Assembly: GCF_032191835.1 (NCBI RefSeq)
Contig: NC_083241.1
Coordinates: forward strand, 496,001-560,000
Direction of reading: 5' to 3'
Length of the DNA: 64,000 bases
Source: Heteronotia binoei
Lineage: Eukaryota
This document shows, piece after piece, positions 20,587 through 43,700 of this stretch (the stretch's first letter is position 1; each line of letters begins with the position of its first letter). A model generated the notes under the pieces. It saw only the letters and a list, made by a program, of their open reading frames with translations, did not search any database and was not told the DNA's origin. The position numbers were made by a program, and so were the translations under genes.

Positions 20587-23500
20587 ACACACACACATAT
20601 ATATGTGTGATAGTTTGAAATTATCTGGTTTGTGTCAATGGATCAGGGGAGAGATTGTTGTCTTTGGGTGGGGGAAGGAACTAGAAGAGATGCTATCTGA
20701 ATTTTCCAACTCCAATTTTCCAATTTTGGCCACTGTGTGACACAGAGTGTTGGACTGGATGGAGCATTGGCCTGATCCAACATGGCCAATGGTCCATCCT
20801 GATCCAACATGGCTTCTCTCGTTCTTCTGTTCCCACCTGGATTTCAGAGATCTTGATGTGGGGCTTCTGGAGCTCCATGGGCGGGGGTTCTGCGTTCCGG
20901 AGCAGGCGGGTCAGCTGTTCGACGATGCCCAGACCCCGGATGAGGTTCTCACGCCGCAAAAGGGCTTTCACCCTCTCCACTTCCTCTTCCTCCACGATCG
21001 GTTGGGGAGTCATGATGTCATACGGCAAAGAGGACATCTGGGGGGGGGGGAGGAACACCCCAGGTCAAAGCTGCCTCTCAGTCAGTCCTGCAGAGTAGAA
21101 CTTCCACCACTTGGCACTGCTCTCCCATCCCTGTACCTGCCAGCCAAGGATTCCCTGCTCTCCCCTCTGGCCTAGAGCAAGGCAGTTGTGGGGAAGCCAC
21201 ACCTGAGCAGGCAAGAGGCCCTGCCCCGGCCTGGTCGTGGGCACAGCTCAGCCCAAGCACTCTACAGGGCCTCCCAGACCAGATCAGCAGGCAGGAGAAA
21301 GCGGGAAAACAGCAAGGCAGGGGAAGGATCCAGCCAGTGGAAATGGATGGCAGCAAGGAGTTTGTGTCCTGGGTGAGGCCCGAAACCACATGGGGCCTGG
21401 GCCCCCCTCCCTCCCTCTGGCTGTGCACCTTTGGGTTCCAGGTCTTGCTGTGGCTGCCAGCCACCCGCGAGAGAGCAGGCTTTGCCCTGCCCTTCTCGTG
21501 GGGCTTCTCCCCAGCAGATTCGCCTTGCAGGGTCTCCTTCGCCTCCCTTTTCTTCTTCCCAGCTGGGCTGTCCTTCTGCTCTTGCTTCTGGCGGATCTCC
21601 TCCAGCTGTTGCCTGCCAGGGACACCATCGTGCAGTGTGTGCGTGGGGAGGCAGGAGCAGAGGGAGGGCTTGCTCCCCCTGCCCCCCCCCCCCCACCGCT
21701 GCTGCTGCCGCCCAGATACCTGGCGCATTCTTCCCTGGCCTTGGAGGCCACTGTCTCCTGGAAGAGGGATCCGCTGTGCTTGAAGAAAGGTGTGTACTTC
21801 TCCGTGCCACGTGCTGGGAAGATGCGTCGGTAGCCCCCCAGGTGGCTGTCCTCATACTTTTCTGCCTGGGCCAGCCAGGCAGCCTGGCTGCTCTCCAGCT
21901 GTTCGCGTCTGGGGCAGGGAGGGGCAGAGCAAAGGTTCAGCAAGGGAGATGCCTCCAGAGTCTTGCGAGTGCTGCGGTTGGCTTCCTCCCCATCTCTGGT
22001 GGGCTAGCCCAAAAGTGCCCTCTTCCCCCCATTTGCCCTAAGGCCCAGCCTCTCTCTGGGCTAGGGAAGAGCCATAGTCAGCCCCTCTTCGCTGCTGCTG
22101 CTTCCCCAGGCCAGCCAGGCAGCTCCTCCTCCTTCCCTGCGGCCTCACCTGGCTTCCCGCGGAGGCTGGTGAGCTTGGAGCAGGCGCTCCTTGACCCGCC
22201 TCTTCTCCTCCTCCAGGACCTTCTTCTTGTCACAAGCCCGCAAGTTGACCAGATTGATGGCATCGCAGAGCAGGGCGTCTTTCACTTCTCGGTCCAGCCG
22301 GGAGTCGGTGGTGAAGCTGGGAGAGTGGTTGACCTGGAAGGGAAGAGCAGCTCAGCCCCACCCCCCGTCCTTGTCCTGGCATCTGGGACGGCAGGACTGG
22401 TGCTTGCACTCCCAGCCACAGAACCTGCTCTGCCTGACCAGATGCTGCACAAGCAGGGGGGTCGCGCAGAAGGGGCTCAGGAGCATCTTCCTTGGGGACT
22501 GCAGGGCCTGAAACAGGGTGGGGCAGGGGGAGGGAGGTGCTGCAAAATGTGGAACCCACCAGGTGGCCCCCAATGGGTGTGCTGCGACTGCTTCGCTAAC
22601 CTGTGGGGGCCTGAGGACATTCTGCAGCTCCAGCTCAGCACTCAAGGAGCAGAGAGGCCCAGATGTTGCATGCAAGGAAGAGCGGGGAGGCACAGATGTG
22701 TGCAAGGAAGGAGCAGAGGCCCAGATGTTGCATGCAAGGAAGGAGCAGAGATGCCCAGATGTTGCATGCAAGGAAGAGCAGGGAAGCACAGATGTGTGCA
22801 AGGGAGGAGCAGGGAGGTCCAGATGTTGCATGCAAGGAAGACAGGGAGCCCTAGATGTTGCATGCAGGGGAAAAGCAGAGAGGCCCAGATGTGTGCAAGG
22901 AAGGAGCAGAGAGGCGCAGATGTTGCATGAAAGGAAGGAGCAGAGAGAGGCCCAGATGTTGCATGCAGGGGAAAGCAGAGGCACAGATGTGTGCAAGGAA
23001 GGAGCAGAGAGGCCCAGATGTTGCATGCAAGGGAGAGCGGGGAGGCAGATGTGTGAAAGGAACGAGCAGGGAAACCCAGATGTTGCGCACAAGGAATGAG
23101 CAGGGAGGCCCAGAAGTTGTACGCAAGGAAGGAGCAGAGAGAGGCCCAGATGTCACGTGCGCAATGAAGAGGCACAGATGTTGCACGGAGGAAGCCCAGA
23201 TGTTGCATGTGAGGGAGGGTGGAGAGGCACAGATGTGCGCAAGGGGGCACAGATGTTGCATGCAGGGGAGGCTGAGGCCCAGATGTTGCACACAAGGAAG
23301 AAGAGGCGTAGATGTTGCGTGCGGGAGAGGGGCAGAGGCCCAGATGTTGTGTACAGGGAAGAAGAGTGCCCAGCTGCTGTATGCGAGGGAGGAGCAGAGA
23401 GGCCCAGATGTTGCGTGCAAGAAAGGAGAAGAGGCCTCGATGCTGAGTGCAAGGAAGGCGCAGAGAGGCCCAGATGTTGCACGCAAGGAAGAAGATATTG

Positions 23501-26500
23501 GATTTATATCCCACCCTCCACTCCGAAGAGTCTCAGAGCAGCTCACAATCTCCTTTACCTTCCTCCCCCATAACAGACACCCTGTGAGGTGGGTGGGGCT
23601 GGAGAGGGCTCTCCCAGCAGCTGCCCTTTCAAGGACAACCTCTGCCAGAGCTCTGGGTGACCCAAGGCCATTCCAGCAACTGCAAGTGGAGGAGTGGGGA
23701 ATCCAACTCGGTTCTCCCAGACAAGAGAGCTCTGGCTGACCCAAGGCCATGCTAGCAGTTCCAAGTGGAGGAGTGGGGAATCAAACCCAGTTCTCCCAGA
23801 TAAGAGTCTGCACACTTAACCACTACACCAAACTGGCTCTCCAAGGAGCAGAGAGGCCCAGATGTTGCATGCAAGGAAGGAGCAGAGGCCCAGATGTTGC
23901 GTGCAAGGAAGGAGCAGGGGCCCAGATGTTGTGTGCAAGGAAGGAGCAGAGCCCAGATGTTGTGTGCAAGGAAGGAGCAGGGGCCCAGATGTTGCATGCA
24001 AGGAAGGAGCAGGGGCCCAGATGTTGTGTGCAAGGAAGGAGCAGAGAGGCCCAGATGTTGCATGCAAGGAAGGAGCAGAGGCCCAGATGTTGCATGCAAG
24101 GAAGGAGCAGAGAGGCCCAGATGTTGCACGCAAGGAAGAAGATATTGGATTTATATCCCACCCTCCACTCCGAAGAGTCTCAGAGCAGCTCACAATCTCC
24201 TTTACCTTCCTCCCCCACAACAGGCACCCTGTGAGGTGGGTGGGCCTGGAGAGGGCTCTCACAGCAGCTGCCCTTTCAAGGACAACCTCTGCCAGAGCTC
24301 TGGGTGACCCAAGGCCATGCCAGCAGGTGCAAGTGAAGGAGTGGGGAATCCAACTCGGTTCTCCCAGACAAGAGAGCTATGGCTAACCCAAGGCCATTCC
24401 AGCAGTTCCAAGTGGAGGAGTGGGGAATCAAACCCAGTTCTCCCAGATAAGAGTCTGCACACTTAACCACTACACCAAACTGGCTCTCCAAGGAGCAGAG
24501 AGGCCCAGATGTTGCATGCAAGGAAGGAGCAGAGGCCCAGATGTTGCATGCAAGGAAGGAGCAGGAGCCCAAATGTTGCATGCAAGGAAGGAGCAGAGGC
24601 CCAGATGTTGCATGCAAGGAAGGAGCAGGGGCCCAAATGTTGCATGCAAGGAAGGAGCAGAGGCCCAGATGTTGCATGCAAGGAAGGAGCAGGGGCCCAG
24701 ATGTTGCATGCAAGGAAGGAGCAGAGGCCCAGATGTTGCATGCAAGGAAGGAGCAGGGGCCCAGATGTTGCATGCAAGGAAGGAGCAGGGGCCCAGATGT
24801 TGCATGCAAGGGAGGAGCAGAGAGAGGCCTGCCAGGGAGGCCTGCCTGGGGGTGGGAGGGCGGGCAGGTGCTTGGCTGGGCGAGAGGACAGAGGGGGCCC
24901 CATTCACCTCCAAGAGCCAGGGCTTAAGCTTCCTGTCCAAGAGGATATCGAAGCCGAGGATCTCGAAGCAGGCGCAGCCCGAGATGTGGTTGGGGAAGCA
25001 GGTGCGGTAGTTGTGCTTCAGCACCGGGTGGGCAGCAATCAGGGTCTTGATGATGATGTCTTCGATGTCATGCCACAACTCGGCCGTGTCGTAGCCGTGC
25101 TCCCGCATCCAGGCCTTCAGCGTGGACAGCTTCCTGTGTGTGTGTGTGGGGGGGAAGCAAATGGGGGTAGGTGTCAAAGCTGCCTGCTAGTGGAGCAGCC
25201 CCAGCTCAGACCTACCAAGCCCCATCCCCAATCTGTCTCTGTGGGCCTTGCTAGCATTGCAGCCTTGGGTGCCTTGCGTGATGGCGCCTGCCCCAGAGGG
25301 CCCTGAACGGGAGACGGAGGTGGCTACGATGGCTGTGCCCAGCCTCCTCTGGGGGGGGGGGGAGTAAATGCAGAGGCCCATGAGCCAAGCTAGGAGCCAG
25401 AACCCACATCTGCTGGAGCCTGGGCTCCATTTCCTTGCCCAGTGATGCCCTCCCACCCCGCTCCCCCAGAAGGAGCGCAGCAGCCAGGCGCTGATCGATC
25501 GCTTGCAAATGTCTCCTTTCTTCTCTGCAGTGCCTCGGCCAGTGGCAATACCTCTTACTGCCTGTGTTCTCATCCCGAACAAAGTTCTCATTGTGCTTGT
25601 TGATGGCGTAGTTGGTCAGGTGCATGCAGATGTCATCCTGAGGGACAGATGGCAGGAAGGGCTACTCCTCTCCCAGGACAGCAGCCTTTGCCCACCTCCC
25701 CATCCACCCCCTCTGGGGGGCCTGTTCTAGCCCTGCCCGGGGCGGCAGCTGCTTGGTGCTGTGGTGGGTGCATGGCCCAGCCAGCTCAGCCTCTTCCCAG
25801 GAAGGAGAGGGAGGCCCTGGAAGCCGAGAAGCCTGCGGATCCCGGGTGCTCTGCTCTGAACCACCCGTGGGTGGCACGTGGCACTCCCAGCCAGACAGCA
25901 CCGCCAGTTAGGTAACTGCCCTCCCAAACCTATGCCGCTCCTGGGGAACGCTCCTTCTTTACCAGGTTGCTGCTGCTGGGCTCGATGTACCTCATGGTGG
26001 CAAAGCGGGCCAGCCCCTCCTCATAAATAAAAATTTTCAGCGGGTCACAGGAAGTGACCAGAACGTAGATGCGCATGTCAAACTTGAAGCCGTCAATGAG
26101 GAAGGGCTGCAAGGAGACAAGCCGAGGAGGGACTGTGGGCGAGGGTGGGTGGGAGCTGCACCAGCTGAGCTAAGCGAGGAGGCAGGGGTCGCTTTGTAGG
26201 AAAAGGTGGTGCTCATCCAGGGATTGTTATGCAGCTGCCCCTACTATTCCATGGGCAAGGTGGGGAGGAGGAGAGGGGGAGCATCAGGAGCTGAATCTGA
26301 GGCCTGCTAGGAGGGCAGGGAAGGGGGCCCAGAGCCCACCTTGTTGATGTACTGCTGGCAGATCATGTGCTCGCCGTGCTTGATCTCCTTGGGGTTGCGT
26401 GTCATGAAGATGCCCCGCCCTTGGCAGCCGCTGTCTGGCTTGCAGATGTATGTCCTGTTCTTCCGCATTCGCCCATAGGCTTGGAAGTCCCCGTAGCTGC

Positions 26501-29951: not shown

Positions 29952-31076
29952 TCAGTCGTCTTGGGCGCCGTCGCAGGGCGGGGGGAGGAGGTCGGCCAGC
30001 TCCTGCTGCAGGCGGGCCCAGCGGGGCGGGGGCAGGAGGCAGCGGCGGATGAGGCGGAGGGCCGCGGCCTCGGAGAGGGCGTGGAAGTCTTGGGCCGTCT
30101 TGACGGGCAGGTGGCCGGCCAGTTCGCAGAGGGCCACGTTGAAGGCGGCCTCCTGCTTGGCGCCGAAGGAAGCCTGGCGGGGCCACAGGAGGACGCGGAG
30201 GCCCGGCCGAGCGCCCGGCGGCCCCCCCTCGGGCGCGGCGCCCCGCGTGGCGAAGAGGTTGTGGGCCACGTCGCCGCGGGCCAGGTGGTCGGTGAGGCGG
30301 CAGACGCGGCGCGCCAGGGGGCCCGGGGGCCGGCCGGCGGGGCTGTAGAAGAGGAGGCCGGGGGCCGGGACGCCGCGCTCCAGCACGTAGAGGCCGGCCT
30401 CGGGGCGCAGGGGCCGGGCGGGCGCCTCCTCGACGGGCAGCTGCCAGGGCAGGTAGTAGGCGTGCAGGTGGAGGTGGTTGACGGAGGCAAAGGCGCCCAG
30501 GCTGTTGAAGCCCACGCGGAAGCCCGGCTGGCCGCTCAGCAGCAGCGCCTCCAGGCCGGCGCGCAAGGCCTCGGCGCTCAGCACCTGCGGCAGCCCCAGC
30601 GACGGCTCCGGCAGCAGCAGCACGTGGCCGAACTCCAGCGGGCTCACGTTGATGGCCACCAGCACCCGCGACGACGAGGCCGCCGCCACCCGCTGCAGGG
30701 CGAAGAGCACCTCGCCCGGCCGGATGTGCGTGAAGTTGAACTGCGCCGGGTCGAAGCTCTGCCGGACGCTGCGCACCTCCTGCGGCCGCCGCCGCTCCGA
30801 GCCCCGCGGCACGTTCAGCTGCGCCACCAGCCCCAGCGGCCCGGGCAGGCGCCGCGTCTGCAGCTCCCCCAGCCGGTAGCGGAAGAGGCCCCGCGCCAGC
30901 CGCTCCTCCCAGCCCCGCTGCAGCGCTCGGTCGAAGGGCGACGCCTGGCCCGCCGCCGCCCACACCAAGTCCTCCGCCGGCCGGTAGGCGAAGACCGCCG
31001 CCGCCTCCTGCTCCTCTTGCAGCGGCCGGGGGGCCCCTTCGGCCGGGCCTGCTCCTGCTGCCGCCTCCGCCTCCAT
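29952..31076 (-). CDS. GDPGP1: GDP-D-glucose phosphorylase 1, single coding exon, 374 aa
   Basis: Starts [11 protein letters not shown]... and contains [63 protein letters not shown] (HIT-like HLHLH motif) and [15 protein letters not shown]. The longer frame in the ORF track starts at a GTG. Confidence 0.95.
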
Positions 31077-31331
31077 CAGGCCGCCCGAGAGCCCCTCGAG
31101 GGAAGGAGGAGGCCGCGCTCGCCACCCAAGTCCCGCCCCGAGGGAGGAAGAGGCGGCAACGGGACCTCCGCGGCCTGGCGCCGGCGCTGCCCGGGCTGAA
31201 GCCGGAGGGAGGGCGGGCGGGCAAGGCGGTCCCGCCTCCCTGGAGGGCCGGGCACTTGGCGGCGGCGGGGAGGTGGCGCAGGCAGTCGAGGGGGCGGAGG
31301 AGGAAGCAGACCCGACGGGGGTTCCGCCGCC

Positions 31332-33209
31332 ATGGGGGGCTCGGGAAGCCGCCTGCCGCGGGATTTGCTCAGCGAGTACCAGGTACGGGGGTGCGGTGGA
31401 GTGGAGGGGGCTCCCGGGAGGCGGACTGAAGCCCCCCCCCCATCGCTCCCTCACTCACACTCTCCCCCCCCCCCCCCAGGAGCTGACTTTCCTGAGCAAG
31501 CAGGAGATCTTGCTGTGAGTAGCGCCCCGCGGGGAGCGGGAGGCGGGGGGGGGGGCTGGAGCTCTGCTCTGCTCGGGCCGGGCGTGGAGGGCCTCTCTGC
31601 GCCCCCCCGCCCAGGCAAGCAGGCGTCTCTGGTTCTTTTGCAGGGCTCACCGGCGCTTCTGCGAGCTGCTGCCCAAGGAGGGGCGGGACCGCGCCTTCCT
31701 CACCCGGCTCCCCCCCAGCAAGATGCTGACGCTGCCCGAGTTGCGGGTAGGGCGGGGTCCGGGCGGGTGGGGAGGCCCCTCTCGGAGGGGGGGATGCCCT
31801 CCAGGTTGCTTTGGGCCTTGGGGGAGGGGGGTGCAGAACCCCAGGGGCAGAAGGGCCACTTGCGCCCATGGAGCTGCCAGGACTGGGGCTCTCCCCCGTC
31901 ACCACCACCACCACCGCGGGGGCTCAGGGGAAGGAGGGGCGCACCCCTAGCAGAGAACAAACACCTTTCCCTTCATTTCTGGGGGGACAGAAACACCTCC
32001 ATTGTCATCGGTATTACCTCTAGGAGGAAAAACAGTCCACTCCCCACCCCCTCCGCAGCTTTAGTGAGGCTGCCCCCTTGGGCTGGGGGGGGGAGGGTGG
32101 CAGCCTTGAGCCCAAGGGCCGCTCACTGGCTCCTCTTGTGTTGGCAGGCAAACCCCTTCTGCCACCGGATCTGCCAGGTCTTCTCCACGGCCGCTGATGG
32201 GGAAGGCGGCCTGTCCTTTGAGGACTTCCTGGACATGCTGAGTGTCTTCAGTGATGCCGCCACCCCAGAGATCAAGTCCCACTACGCCTTCCGCATCTTT
32301 GGTGAGGAGGCCCCCAGGTGCCAGGGCGGACAGACAAGCACACATCCAGGGGCTCCGTCTCTCTCCAAAGGACCAGAAAGCCACCTCACCCCCGGCCAGA
32401 GGGCAGACTGCCTCCCAGGGCTGTTGTGAGGCTGAAGTAGCTTAAGCTTCTTTCAGGAAAAGCCAAAGCAAAGTGGCGTCACTTTGGTGGGGCGGGGCCT
32501 TTCCAGCATAGCAGAAACCCCCCCATCATCTGTAGATGCCACTGAAGGAGCTGCCGCGTGGATCTAGCCCCGCTTGCATCGGCAGCTCGGTTGCTACTCC
32601 GTCCCTCGCCTGTTGCCTGCTGCGGTGTGTCCCAGGAAGGGGACAGGCCTCTGGACTCTGCCCCTTCCCACCTGAGCAGGCGGGTTGCCTAGGCCCTGAG
32701 CAGAGTCCGGCCTCCAGCTGGGAGTCCTTCAGGTGCAGCAGCCTTTCCCACACAAGCAAACTCTCTCCTCCTTTTCCTTCCTTGAGATTTCGATGATGAT
32801 GGAACTCTGGACAAGAGAGACCTGGAGAATCTGGTGAAATGCCTGACTGGAGAAGGAGAGGAGAGCCGGCTGAGCCCCACGGAGATGGGCCAGCTCCTCC
32901 AGAACGTAAGGGCTCGGGTGGGGGGGGGTGTTGGTTCTGGCCTGGCGGGGGTGGGGGCTCCCACTGCTCTGACCCGTGGCTCTCTCCGTGGCTGCCTCAT
33001 TTCCTGCAGATCCTAGAAGAATCTGATATCGACAAGGATGGGACCATCAACCTCTCTGAGTTCCAGCACATCATCTCGCGCTCGCCCGACTTCCCAAGGT
33101 AGCTCCTGCTGTTCTGCTCCTGGGGCTGGGGCTGAGGGCCCCCAGCCCGCCCGAGCCTGAGCAGCTCTCGCCTCCCTTCTCTTTCAGCTCCTTCAGAATT
33201 GTGCTGTGA
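31332..33209 (+). CDS. CIB1: Calcium and integrin-binding protein 1, 190 aa
   Basis: Exons 31332-31382, 31480-31514, 31644-31746, 32148-32301, 32787-32905, 33010-33098, 33188-33209 (573 nt). N-myristoylation start MGGSGS, EF-hand loops [12 protein letters not shown] and [13 protein letters not shown]-terminus SSFRIVL. AATAAA at about 33636-33641. Confidence 0.97.
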
Positions 33210-37700: not shown

Positions 37701-40700
37701 AGGATCAATCTCCTCCAAGCTCTCCTCCTCCCATCTCAAGAGTTCGAAGCAGGCTCCGGAAAGAACTTTCAGAGCGAAGACATGAGGCACACTGCTTCAG
37801 ATCTCTCAGCCCTAAGTTCTAGCAGAGTCTCTGCCACCCAGGGAGCAGGCTGATTGAGAATCCCATATAGCTGCCACCCAGGTCCTGGTAACCTCCTGGA
37901 AGCAACAAGTCTATTCTCTGGCTTGCATCCACGCTCTTCCTGCTCCTGACCTGCTTGATTTCCTTGGCACCCTGACCTTTTGGCTTTTGGACATTGACTT
38001 CTGACTCCGGTTTGTGATTCTGCATTGGTGACTTGGCTCCTGCTTGACTTCCTGGACTGGCTTTGGACTCCTGCCTGCCTGCACCCTAAGAACGTGACAC
38101 TGAGCAATGACTCCTCCTCCTCCTCTTCAGACTCCGTCCTGTGTCTTGGAAAGCCCTGGCCCCCTGGCAGTCACCCCGGTGTTGCCTTCAGCTATCCTAG
38201 TGCCAGCTCTCATGCGAATGGTGCACAGGACCTCTGGGGCCCTTTCCAAGCAAGACTGGGGGGCTGGTCCACTCATTCCACCCCTCACCCCCAGACCCCC
38301 TTTCCCCCGCTGGCCGCCCACCTGTCCCCAGGAAGAGGACGTCGTAGGCGTAGTGCAGGCCCTGGACACGCTGCACACTGATCTGCTGGTAGTGAGCCTG
38401 GCTCTGCGGCAGGAGGGGCTGGCTGCGCACGGCGCTGTCCATCAGGAAGTGGTCCTTCAGGTAGTTGAGCACCCGGTCGGGCATCTGGAGCGAAGAGGTG
38501 ATCTTCATGTGGCGTGTCTGGCTGGTGATGCACTGGAGAGGGGAGGGAGAGGATTGGACCAGCAGCTGCTGATAAGGACTAAAGGGAAGCCCTGGATCAG
38601 ACCAACGCTGTGTCACACAGGGGCCAACCCCCCCCCCCCCCGGTGCCACCAGGAGCTCCACCAGCAGGGGCAGGAGCCCTCCCCCATCACCCCCTGCAAG
38701 CTCTCCCGGGTCTCCAGCATCCATGGCACAGGTGGGACGAAGCTGCAGCAAGAGCCACCCACTTCAGTGTCTCCCCCCGCCCCCAAGTACCTACCGCTCC
38801 AGGGCGGGGCTCTGGCACAGGGTGGGTGTCTGTGTACCACTGCTGCGTCTCTCGGTTGATTTCCTTGTAGAGGCCATTGAAGACTTCCGTCACGGCAGGC
38901 ATGGAGAAGGCGCAGACTGCTGTCCCCACACTGCCCTTCTTATCCCTGGCGGAGAGGAAGAGAAGTCCTGAGTGGGCAAGCAGCAAAGCGAGAAGGAGGC
39001 GTGGACCCCAAACCCCAACGCACCAGCCAGGAACCAAGGAGGCCTGGGAGCCAGTGTTCTGAGATGCCCTGAATGCCTGCAGGGCTGGCCTCTCCCCCTC
39101 CCCCGTCAGCTCTCCCTGCCCCCCCTCCTGCTGGAGTGGATGTGGTCTCCTCCCCCACTCCTGCAGCTCACCACTGAGAGGAGAAGACCCCGTAGAAGAT
39201 GGTCTCCTGCCAGCCCTCTCCTGGCGTCAGCGTGAACATGTCCTGCAGCACGTTGAAGGGGAAGCCGTCCCCGGGGCGGGAGCACAGCAGCTGGGCTTTC
39301 AGAAAGGTTGTCCAGCGCCTCTGGAGCACTCGCTCTCCCCCCACATCTCCCTGGTTTTAAACAATTTTATTAATAACATATGGTTACAATATTTAATTAT
39401 GTCCTTACTATCTCTAACCCATGATATTTTCAAACCCCCCTCCCTCCATTACTAGACTTCCGCCGAAGTTATATACTTAAGTTCAATTAAAAAGGCACCC
39501 CTAACCAATCAAAAATCAATGTCTTTCTTTTCTCCCATTCACATTAAAAAATTGTCCAATGTATTTTTTCTTGCTTCCACAACTGCGCATACAATGTCTT
39601 AGCAGCTGAGAGCAAACACCAAATTAAAGTCCTATCTTTCCGCCCACATCTCCCTTGCAGGAAGGAGGGCAAAGCAGAAACAGCCCAAAGTCAGGCAAAA
39701 CAATCAGTGTTTCACTGGTGACTGGGAACGGCCTGGCCCCGGCGGGACTTAGACAGAAGCTCTTCCCACTTCTGCATTCAGCAGCAAAGGGCATTTTAAA
39801 CAAACTTGTACCCAGGGTGGAGACCACGTTTCAGCCAGGGGGTCTAGAGCTTCAGCAACCCGCCCAGAGCACCTCAACAGGATCTCTCCTTCCTTGGGGA
39901 GGACTTCCTTGGGGTGGAGGCCGTTCCCTGAGCCATCCCCTCTGAGTTCAGAGGAAAGGGTCTCTGCCTGGGATCCTGGAGAGAGCCTGTAGTGCCAGCC
40001 TTATGAGGGGACCCTATCTGGCAGCTGCCCATTCACACACACACACACACACCCAGCAAAGGGCAGGGATGCCCTGGGTGAAACGGTGCAGACACGCTCA
40101 CTTGGGGGCATCCTCTTCCCCAGAGGGCCCACAGCAGGGGCTGAGAGGCTCTTATGGGAGTGCTGGGGGGGGGGACTCCATGCGGATCCTGCCCTGATGG
40201 ATGGATAAAAGGAAGTACTTCTTCACCCAAAGGGTGATTAACATGTGGAATTCACTGCCACAGGAGGTGGTGGCGGCCACAAGTATAGCCACCTTCAAGA
40301 GGGGTTTAGATAAAAATATGGAGCACAGGTCCATCAGTGGCTATTAGCCACAGTGTATGTGTGTATATAACATTTTTTGCCACTGTGTGACACAGAGTGT
40401 TGGACTTGATGGGCCGTTGGCCTGATCCAACATGGCTTCTCTTATGTTCTTATGCCCTCTGGCCACAAGGAGGCTCCCCAGTCCCCCCACCTGCCAGCCT
40501 GGTCTAGAGCAGGAGGCCCTTTGCAAGGCCACAGGACGTGCGGCCACAGCTACATCCTCCAGCCGTGAGTCCCAACTGCGCAGGAAGCACTTCTCCCGTC
40601 CTCTTCTTCTGGCCTTCAGCTTCTGCAGCCAGCTGCCAGTCTGACTTTTATGGGAGAGGGAGAAGCAGCCCTCGCTATCCACATTCTCCACACAGTCACT

Positions 40701-43700
40701 CTCTTATATTCCTGATCCTTGAAACGTCTGATTCTCAGCCTTTCCTTACAGACCCTGCAATCGTCATGATGGTTCTCTCTTCTGCACTGTAGTGTGGCTT
40801 CTGGGATATGGCAACCTGAACTCTACGCAGTGTTCCCAAGATCTGGGCAAGAACGCTGCAATCCTGGCTGCTCTGCTAGCACAGAAACCCCCCCACCTTT
40901 CCACAGCTGGGGCTCAGGGAAATCTTCTGGGGCTGGCCACCGTGAGCCCAGGGCCAGACCTCCTAAAGTTACTCACGCTCCACCTCCTCCTCATTCCTAG
41001 GTCATCGCTGGCTCTCCCTCTTTGGAGAGATCCTTTGGGACCTCTGCGTTCCTGAAGAACTGGTCTGCCACCTGACCGTGCTCAGCAGGACGCAGTTTCA
41101 GGGGGAAAGCCTCCTCTCCCCACCCCCCACCCGGTTACCCTGGCCAAGTTCCACAGTGCAGCACACGTGGCTCTCACCTTGCACACTCGTGCGATGCGTG
41201 ACACAACGGTGTCCTCAAAGAAGTCAAACTCCTTGCCGCTCTCGCTGAAGAAGAAGTACACCTTGTCGTCATCTCCCTGGGGGTTGCTGGGGGGGAGACT
41301 TTCCCGGAGGACAGCGGAGCCCACGAAGGAAGGGTCTGTGCCACGGCCACACCAAAGACAGGCCAGTAAGTGCCAACAGCCCCCTGCCCCCAAGAGAGCC
41401 CCACCCTGGAGTCGCTTGCCGAAGGGGAAGCTGAGAGGGGGCCAGCGGAAGAGCTGCAGAGCCTTGCTCCCTGTGCCTGATCAGCCCAGCCCAAGCTCTG
41501 AATGCAGTGAAGAACCCCCCACCCCACCCCAGCAGGCTATGCTGCCAGTTCTCCTCCCCTCCCCCAATGTACCTTGCAGCCAGCTGAGGGAGTTCTCTGT
41601 CTTGACAGCCCCACGGCTGCTGCTGTGACTGCGCGAGATGGTCGGCTCATTGCCCTGGAAGTTGCTCACCGTCCCCGTGTACAGCTCCCCGTCTGCAAAA
41701 CAGAGCCCCCCCTCACAGCAAGCAGAACCAGCTCCTGGGCCTCTGACCCACCTGAGACCAGGTCCTCCCTCTCCAAACCCTTGGCCTCAGCCCCGCCCCG
41801 GCTGCCTTCTCTCCTCCTCCTCGTGCTCATGGGCCAGTCTTCCCCAGCCCCCTTACCAACAAGAAGGGCCGTGGATCTGTACTCTGGGTCAAAGGGGCAG
41901 CGGCCTTTCCCATCCTCCAGCACCAGCCGCCCCGACGCGTCCCGCTGCAGGCTGAAGTCTGGGATGCTCTGCAAGGGAGAGAGAGATGGGAGGGGGGAGG
42001 GACAATCGGGTGGGGCTCCCTCTAGCCTGGAAGCCCTTCCCCCAGCACTAAGGCTGTCTGCACGTGCTCAGAGGCCCTGCCTGCTTCTTTCTTTGCACTT
42101 CTAGGGACTGAGAGCGGCTGGAGGCAAGTCCCAGCACAGGCAGAACCATGAAGGGATGAGGCCAGGGAAAGCCCTTCCCTTCATTCTCCCTTTGCAAGGC
42201 AAACACTACACCTTGGGGAAGGGGTATACCTCCCCCGCCAGACGCAAAGCCAGCCAGCCAGCCAGGGACAGCAGAGAGCATCTGCCCAGAAATGGGCCTT
42301 GGAACAGCGCCTCTCCCCCAGCCAGCAGCACTGCGCTCCCCTTGGCAAGAATGCCATGGACAGCACTGCCCGTCCGCCAGCACCAGCCTCCCCGAATGCC
42401 ACTCCCCAGCAAGGATGCTCCGGGAAGCCCCAGCAAAGCAGGTGTGCGGGTGGCCACCCAATCCAGCCACCCTCCCACTCAGGCGGCCCTCTCCCCAATC
42501 CCAGTGCTTACCAGGTAGGTGCAGGTGGGGCTGAAGGCGCTGGTTCCACAGGTGTAGAGGTGGGTGTCATTCAGCTGCAGCAGGATCTTGATGTAGTTGT
42601 GGCAGTCTCTCTGGAGGGGGCGGCAGGGCACTGGCATCCAGCCGGGTGGCTCCCCAACCTCCCCTCACCCTGCCCTCTGCACCAGTCAGTCCGCCTTGCC
42701 CCCACCCCAGCTGGGCAGGAGGATGGGCACTCACCTGGGGGTCCTTGCCCTTGAAGACGCACTGCTGCTTCTTCTCCTCCTCGGCAGCCCACAGCAGCTG
42801 CAACAGACAGGGAGCCACGCTGACGGAGGGGGGAGGGGGGCTCTATGCACCTGCCCGCTGCCCTGGCGCCCCTCCCTCCCTCCCTGCACAACTGCCCAAG
42901 GTGCCCCGACCTGCAGGCTGTGGGCTCTGCCCCTGCTTGCGCTCTCTGGCTGTGGGGCTCAAAACCAAGTCCTGGTCTGAAGCCAAGAGGTGGGCACAGC
43001 AGAGAGCAGGGGCCAGAGAGCCCCCCCCCCCGGGGCTTGTTCTTGCAAGGAGAGCACAAGCCTTTGGAAGAGACCCAGCCTCGGCAGGAGGAGCGTCCCT
43101 CCAGCAGACGGAGAGCGGCAGGGGAGGCAGAGAAGGGGGGGCGGGCACTCACGCTGCGATGCTGCGGCCCAGGAGAGAAGGCGCTGGTGTTGAGGGCGAG
43201 GAGGGTCTCGCGGGCCCCCACATACAAGGTGCCCCCATCCGGACTCAGCAGCAGGACGGTGTAGTTGGTGACACCGGGCAGTTCAAAGCGGTGGGCCAGC
43301 CGGCTGGGGAAGTCTGAGAAGAGGCAGGCAAAGAGGCCTGTTGGAGCACAGGTGGCCCAGAGAGTCCCTTGCCCGCCCCAGAGTGCCTTCATGGGCTCCC
43401 ATGGCAGAGACAACGCTGCAGCCCTGCTCCTCCTCCCTGAGCGCTTTGGGGGCCAGCAGAATGCCAGGGGCAACCCCCCCCCCCATGACTGCTTCCCTGT
43501 AAGCAAGAAGGACCTCTGCCCCCCAAGCCCGCCCTGCCCTCTGGGGCCCCACAAGGAGGGAGGGGAGTGATGGGAGCAGACCCCCCCTTGGCTGACAGCC
43601 CCTGGGCCTGAGTGGCCCCAGGAGGGCCTGGAGTGGGCACCGTGGGGGGGGGGGGTTGTGTGCCAGTCTTGCATCCTCATTGGACAGGGAAAGCACATGC

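Follow-up and report, generated by a model that had tools for sequence, protein, structure and literature searches.

An L1 fragment inserted in exon 7 of a gecko SEMA4B gene, with a target-site duplication that regenerates the splice acceptor and the exon start

The stretch of Heteronotia binoei DNA analyzed here (the window; 64,000 nucleotides, positions 496,001 to 560,000 of contig NC_083241.1, assembly GCF_032191835.1) carries on its minus strand a SEMA4B gene, exon 7 of which has received the 3' end of an L1 retrotransposon. The insert is a sense-oriented fragment of 286 bp (39353..39638) that lies 15 nt downstream of the exon 7 acceptor, and the target-site duplication flanking it holds the acceptor AG together with the first 15 exon bases. 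A second acceptor and exon start thus stand directly before an intact exon 7, and the insertion allele may be rescued through this regenerated acceptor, a reading to which we give nearly an even chance. The arrangement itself had been proposed in the original prediction, and it was confirmed on the minus-strand sequence: all of the coordinates and translations given there were reproduced, including the acceptors at 39654/39653 and 39351/39350. Coordinates are those of the whole window, the claims on the SEMA4B sequence were verified on the minus strand, and a slash within a sequence marks the boundary between intron and exon unless stated otherwise.

The direct repeat AGGGAGATGTGGG occurs at 39655-39643 and again at 39352-39340, with an offset of 303 nt, and its 13 bp match perfectly. 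It had been taken, with 11 exon bases, as the whole of the duplication. The 13 perfect base pairs stand, but the duplication in full probably extends over 17 bp (39655-39639 and 39352-39336), of which 16 match: past the perfect part the upstream copy reads cGGA and the exon gGGA. Since the gecko Paroedura picta has G at the mismatched position, as does the exon, it is the upstream copy that is taken to have changed (C at 39642). On this comparison, the target-site duplication is probably 17 bp long with one mismatch and 15 exon bases, and L1 proper probably begins at 39638. The upstream copy (39639..39655) contains the old acceptor, ...ctttgccctccttcctgcAAG/GGAGATGTGGG, at 39654/39653. The downstream copy (39336..39352) begins with the AG at 39352-39351, which together with the terminal C of the L1 forms the CAG of the new acceptor, ...gtttaaaacCAG/GGAGATGTGGG, at 39351/39350. 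The ancestral branch site, pyrimidine tract and AAG acceptor have thereby been displaced to 303 nt upstream of the exon. The reading frame from the old acceptor (39624..39653) runs GDVGGKIGL and then meets TAA (39626-39624) at codon 10, as had been predicted. This stop lies >50-55 nt before the last exon junction, with at least seven exons downstream, a placement expected of premature stops that elicit nonsense-mediated decay.

The insert is an L1-clade long interspersed element (LINE), a product of target-primed reverse transcription from an autonomous L1 family. It is truncated at the 5' side within the C-terminal region of open reading frame (ORF) 2, stays collinear with family copies down to their exact 3' end, and is flanked by a duplication within the 7-20 bp range; the family has an ORF2 of the L1 type. 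A related family copy (L021) contains an intact ORF2 of 1,191 aa that matches RVT_1 at 5.7e-38 and human L1 ORF2p (8uw3) at an E-value of 1e-148 over residues 49-1175. Its C-terminus is 89% identical to that of the ORF2 of the closest copies of the insert, for which the genome has about 42,000 first-look candidate matches. For the 290 bases between the repeats there are >3,400 first-look candidates, and the scored copies (>40) are 95-98% identical. Both an alignment and a contig that continues into family sequence place the start of the family sequence at 39638. The window copy lacks about 142 bp present in every other scored copy (breakpoint 39561/39560), and 69 reads from other L1 copies leave the window sequence at 39561 to enter the missing segment. 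Splicing of the L1 RNA was ruled out as the origin of this internal deletion, the boundaries of which are not GT..AG.

At its 3' end the insert reads ...GTTTAAAACC, with the terminus AAAACC at 39358-39353. Family copies L004, L005, L009 and L010 have the same end: they read ...AATAAAATTGTTTAAAACC and pass directly into unrelated flanking sequence. Because family copies end with AAAACC directly before the flank, the family lacks a poly(A) tail, and its sequence closes with the dinucleotide CC. The 'A-tail of 4 nt' and the 'two unexplained C's' of the original prediction therefore dissolve into the normal terminus of a poly(A)-less L1 family, and the CC is no anomaly. The copy at L005:1450-1740 (G000:C4:138.27 Mb), also 5'-truncated, has a perfect 20-bp target-site duplication abutting the AAAACC on its 3' side, again with no poly(A). 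Two hallmarks of mammalian L1, the poly(A) tail and the TT/AAAA-like target, are thus missing: the target here is GCA/AGGG (the slash marking the target cut), the targets examined for this family are not TT/AAAA-like, and neither the window copy nor any of the family copies examined has an A tail. Such ends and targets seem to characterise this gecko L1 family, and they are no argument against retrotransposition.

Intron 6 of Paroedura, about 930 bp long, ends ...ctttgactctgggttgtttctgctttgccttccttccggccggccag/GGCGATGTGGGGGGAGAGCGGG and has no L1 at this site; its 3' end can be recognised as the counterpart of the sequence that precedes the old acceptor in the window. The exon of this orthologue without the L1 is thus preceded by sequence like that of the old acceptor and not by unrelated sequence, in keeping with the original prediction. 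In a more distant sauropsid contig (L022) the boundary is pyrimidine-rich, ...gcag/GGAGAC..., and genomic ORFs of other species all run ...Q/GD.GGERVLQ, so the acceptor position is ancient and conserved across amniotes. Given the empty site in Paroedura and the homology of the intron ends, the L1 insertion in exon 7 is, judged from these sequences, lineage-specific.

The window copy differs from the majority of 16 family copies at 3 of 285 positions. One of the three differences is common to 4 of the 16 copies, that at 39617 is shared with the copy at C19:2.6 Mb, and that at 39599 alone is private. The insertion may thus be very recent, with at most one private substitution. It is possibly too young for a dead gene to have decayed, and the open SEMA4B exons are therefore no sign of retained function. 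The other exons had been described as open, and they are: residues 42-842 of turtle SEMA4B are collinear with the open exons of the window, except for about 40 residues (539-579) without a match. Their openness carries little weight, however, in view of this possible youth. The argument that an intact gene implies retained function was accordingly rejected, as one of two apparently private substitutions turned out to be common to another copy.

The two acceptors were compared by their core, pyrimidine fraction, longest pyrimidine run, branch-like motif and upstream AG, rather than by a MaxEnt-type score. The old acceptor has the core AAG/G, with the less favoured A at -3, a pyrimidine fraction of 0.85 with a longest run of 11, and CTGAC at -38. 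The new acceptor has the core CAG/G, a pyrimidine fraction of 0.45 with a longest run of 3, and TTAAT at -20; neither has an AG for >48 nt upstream. The sequence of the new acceptor contains what is expected of a functional 3' splice site, namely YAG/G, a branch-like motif within 18-40 nt, and no AG between them. The acceptors of SEMA4B exons 5 and 6 are also pyrimidine-poor (0.45-0.55; 0.45 for exon 5). Measured against the normal range of the gene, the new tract falls at the margin, not beyond it, and it is far below the tract of the old site. Exon 7 would measure 482 nt from the old acceptor, compared with the native 179 nt from the new one. On established splicing models, exon definition should favour the new acceptor, which offers the native length and the native exonic context. 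As 179 is not a multiple of three, skipping of exon 7 shifts the frame.

RNA evidence came from two raw-read runs of 2026 with the same species label, X17 and X18, about 6% of each being read. Depth in X18 is about 3.5-4.6 over exons 5-6 and about 2.8 over exon 7, and is higher around the junction of exons 8 and 9; dips can come from the human-read filter, and contrasts in depth from exon to exon were left uninterpreted. The exon 8/9 junction (38532/38795) is the only SEMA4B junction among those listed, with 4 and 34 reads (34 in X18); the listing, filled by repeat-derived junctions, includes neither 41178 to 39350 nor 41178 to 39653. Unique intron bins, including the one just upstream of the old acceptor, contain no RNA reads. 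Within the L1, the window allele at 39617 is found in 0 of 13 reads of X18 and 0 of 10 of X17, that at 39512 in 0 of 3 reads, and that at 39599 in 3 of 94; the RNA reads over the L1 are from other L1 copies. From the near-absence of window alleles, the insert is not part of the steady-state SEMA4B mRNA in these animals. At three sites, however, namely 39279 (71 bp from the insertion), 38395 and 41607, X18 is homozygous for an allele that differs from the reference, each time by a synonymous change; at 38517 it is heterozygous (Thr/Ala). It therefore carries other haplotypes, from which the insertion may be absent. Two RNA contig runs (X1 and X3), which appeared to cover about 20% of the stretch, were rejected as evidence on the locus, since their cover consists of the L1 and an intronic repeat resembling a short interspersed element (SINE) and includes no exons.

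A sense L1 3' fragment thus landed by target-primed reverse transcription 15 nt past the exon 7 acceptor. The 17-bp duplication copied the AG and 15 exon bases, and the L1 end AAAACC provided CAG/G before an untouched exon 7. In the explanation we propose, the regenerated acceptor would then be used for a substantial share of the transcripts of the insertion allele, so that the insert leaves the transcript with intron 6, which it lengthens, and the SEMA4B mRNA is normal. We infer this use from the native 179-nt exon with its own enhancers, the optimal CAG/G core and TTAAT at -20. In pyrimidine fraction the new acceptor does not fall below those of exons 5 and 6 (0.45-0.55), and no competing AG lies in the >48 nt upstream. 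The absence of the insert from the mRNA in X18 and the rarity of retained insertions in NF1 (PMC3219598) also speak for it. Transcripts spliced at the old acceptor would carry the premature stop and would be degraded. The insertion allele would on this account be tolerated and possibly leaky, and not an evolved switch. Several points weigh against such a rescue. The old acceptor is complete and has a much better pyrimidine tract (0.85 vs 0.45; longest run 11 vs 3), and the insert brings with it AATAAA, 14 nt before the CA at its end, followed by the G/GU-rich start of the exon. Furthermore, the possibly very recent age deprives the intact gene of value as evidence for kept function, and the animals that supplied the RNA reads may lack the insertion, in which case their reads say nothing on this allele.

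These same points enter into the view that the assembled haplotype has caught a recent loss-of-function or strongly hypomorphic allele, probably polymorphic, which we consider a real possibility although somewhat short of an even chance. Function would be lost mainly through the old acceptor, with its codon-10 stop and nonsense-mediated decay, through skipping of exon 7 and the resulting frameshift, or through cleavage at the L1 AATAAA, the old acceptor and the L1 then making up a terminal exon; premature cleavage of this kind is a possible further outcome. The ancestral branch site and strong tract have been kept at the old acceptor, and the new acceptor was counted as having the weakest tract of the gene. 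The AATAAA at 39371-39366 is followed by CA and the G/GU-rich exon start, an insertion with at most one private substitution is young enough to be a segregating deleterious allele, and the RNA-seq animals have a different haplotype beside the site. Sema4b knockout mice are viable. In NF1, moreover, exonic Alu/L1 insertions led most often to exon skipping (PMC3219598). On the other hand, the insertion lies exactly in the narrow zone where a duplication restores the exon, as expected if exonic insertions are filtered by selection. Neither L1-bearing SEMA4B reads nor a drop from exon 6 to exon 7 were counted in X18, a result that is uninformative if the animal is without the insert.

The original prediction had also offered the pair of acceptors as an evolved regulatory switch, in which SEMA4B output is tuned by way of a poison acceptor and nonsense-mediated decay. 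The architecture alone speaks for it, the acceptors being 303 nt apart and the frame from the upstream one meeting a premature stop >55 nt ahead of the last junction, but the same look is expected by chance for any exonic insertion of this geometry. The insertion is young and absent from Paroedura, the nearest available relative. The configuration lacks conservation, and none of the reads shows splicing at the old acceptor. Neither regulated use nor evolutionary conservation of a poison acceptor was thus found in the RNA reads or in the Paroedura comparison; the claim of a switch found no support, and we consider it very unlikely. That the L1 piece came from a chimeric read or a mis-join, the true locus being empty, is extremely unlikely. 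None of the DNA runs compared has >11% of the words of the stretch, which would be in line with such an artefact. However, a 17-bp duplication that precisely flanks an element ending at its exact family terminus is the signature of retrotransposition and not of a mis-join, and the locus is single-copy in the assembly.

Premature polyadenylation by sense intronic L1 is known for human L1. The window resembles such cases in having a sense L1 3' end with AATAAA inside a transcription unit, and differs from them in that the RNA reads give no sign of termination and cover SEMA4B exons downstream of the insert. As in alternative 3' splice sites coupled to nonsense-mediated decay, the upstream acceptor adds an in-frame stop well before the last exon junction; unlike the known regulatory cases, which are conserved and show regulated use, the SEMA4B pair is young and lineage-specific.

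Closer parallels are provided by exonic insertions in NF1 and by introner transposons. In the NF1 series, element sequence remained in the mRNA for only two of 13 exonic Alu/L1 insertions, skipping being the commonest result; where an Alu had landed 30 nt past an acceptor, splicing shifted to a 3' site further downstream (PMC3219598). SEMA4B shares with these cases an insertion made by the L1 machinery in a coding exon, a duplication of 7-20 bp, and the expectation of splicing rather than read-through (PMC3219598). In contrast to NF1, the downstream site in SEMA4B is an exact copy of the native AG and exon start and not a cryptic site that truncates the exon, and its use would restore normal mRNA. 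An introner transposon takes the 3' AG of the intron it creates from its target-site duplication (PMC11282704). Here too the duplication supplies the splice-site dinucleotide, so that an insert in coding sequence can be cut out precisely by the spliceosome. Introners, however, are a specialised kind of DNA transposon found in algae and protists; they generate introns where none existed and carry the other splice site with them, whereas the SEMA4B insert is a LINE fragment that lengthens an existing intron by 303 nt and relies on its existing donor. It is thus no case of introner-type intron gain: the duplication does supply the AG of the new acceptor, but an existing intron has been extended, and the insert comes from an ordinary autonomous L1 family, for which candidate matches number in the tens of thousands. 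The SEMA4B case combines features of both systems, in that a LINE lies just inside an exon and the duplication supplies an exact replacement acceptor.

A retrotransposon that has inserted in an exon is usually counted as a knockout. Should this one be spliced out through the duplicated acceptor, it would show a simple route by which such an insertion is neutral from the moment of landing. An intron-exon boundary would then have moved ('intron sliding') without a point mutation, the poly(A)-less L1 terminus providing the missing acceptor context. That terminus, with its branch-like TTAAT (39373-39369), U-rich stretch, CC and lack of poly(A), may predispose this L1 family to form an acceptor whenever the duplication starts with AG. 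We would go further only tentatively, with confidence that falls somewhat below even, to suggest that the regenerated acceptor is efficient and that the L1 insertion in this conserved coding exon was harmless at once, having merely lengthened an intron by 303 nt; this would be a LINE-driven equivalent, in a vertebrate, of what introners do. If the allele is null instead, the reference genome contains a segregating loss-of-function variant of an ordinary kind, which deserves a flag in the annotation. The locus is a clean natural test, with a size difference of 303 bp between alleles.

Exon 6 of SEMA4B (..DPSFVGS...SRIARVCK) is located at 41178..41336 on the minus strand, ends in phase 0 before a GT donor at 41177-41176, and is 86% identical to the Paroedura exon. 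The ancestral intron 6 spans 39654..41177, and its 3' signals are the CTGAC branch-like motif (A at 39691), the pyrimidine tract at 39680-39657 and the AAG at 39656-39654; it is this 3' end that is homologous to that of Paroedura intron 6. The intact exon 7 (39172..39350, 179 nt) covers positions 1-27 of the Sema profile, is 93% identical to its Paroedura counterpart and is followed by the donor GTGAGC at 39171. Exon 8 (38795..38945) is joined to exon 9 (38532) in RNA reads. The Pfam Sema profile is covered in order by four exons in a row (1-27, 31-76, 77-144 and 146-181), with a PSI domain after them, and the C-terminus in the last exon is ...GSEIRDSVV. The exon 7 region is single-copy in the assembly, and no second copy or haplotig of it was found. 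An exact-protein look-up gave no record of ORFs spanning either insertion junction. A protein search with exon 7 matched distant species only, at identities of up to 85%, and a search with a full-length caecilian SEMA4B listed no squamates among its top 120 matches.

Reads pile up at the exon 8/9 junction (38433-38894), where neighbouring depth is 3-5; this may stem from the human-read filter applied in read placement. Within intron 6, the SINE-like repeat (40200-40455, minus strand) reaches an RNA depth of about 2,200 in X18. Many of its reads go back by 63-69 nt, which means that in other copies a further tandem unit of about 66 nt is present at 40386-40452. A (GT)n microsatellite at 40045-40062 of the same intron was skipped as a repeat in read placement.

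Downstream of SEMA4B the window contains CIB1-like, GDPGP1 and TTLL-like sequences. The annotated order in Paroedura picta is a Sema/PSI/Ig protein of 841 aa, an EF-hand protein, GDPGP1, a TTL protein and Neugrin, which is the same synteny. Within 29955-32429 of the window, the GDPGP1 ORF is intronless (374 aa, minus strand, 31076-29955) and a CIB1-like exon lies on the plus strand at about 32100-32400, in the order of Paroedura picta. The GDPGP1 of the window is nearest to gecko proteins (Paroedura, 70%; Sphaerodactylus, 70%), which places the genome among the gekkotan lizards. In the region of the TTLL-like gene (22643-24822), tandem repeat arrays of 32-34 bp (units AAGGAGCAGAGGCCCAGATGTTGCATGCAAGG, 9-26 copies each) are interleaved with a repeat pair of about 79 bp.

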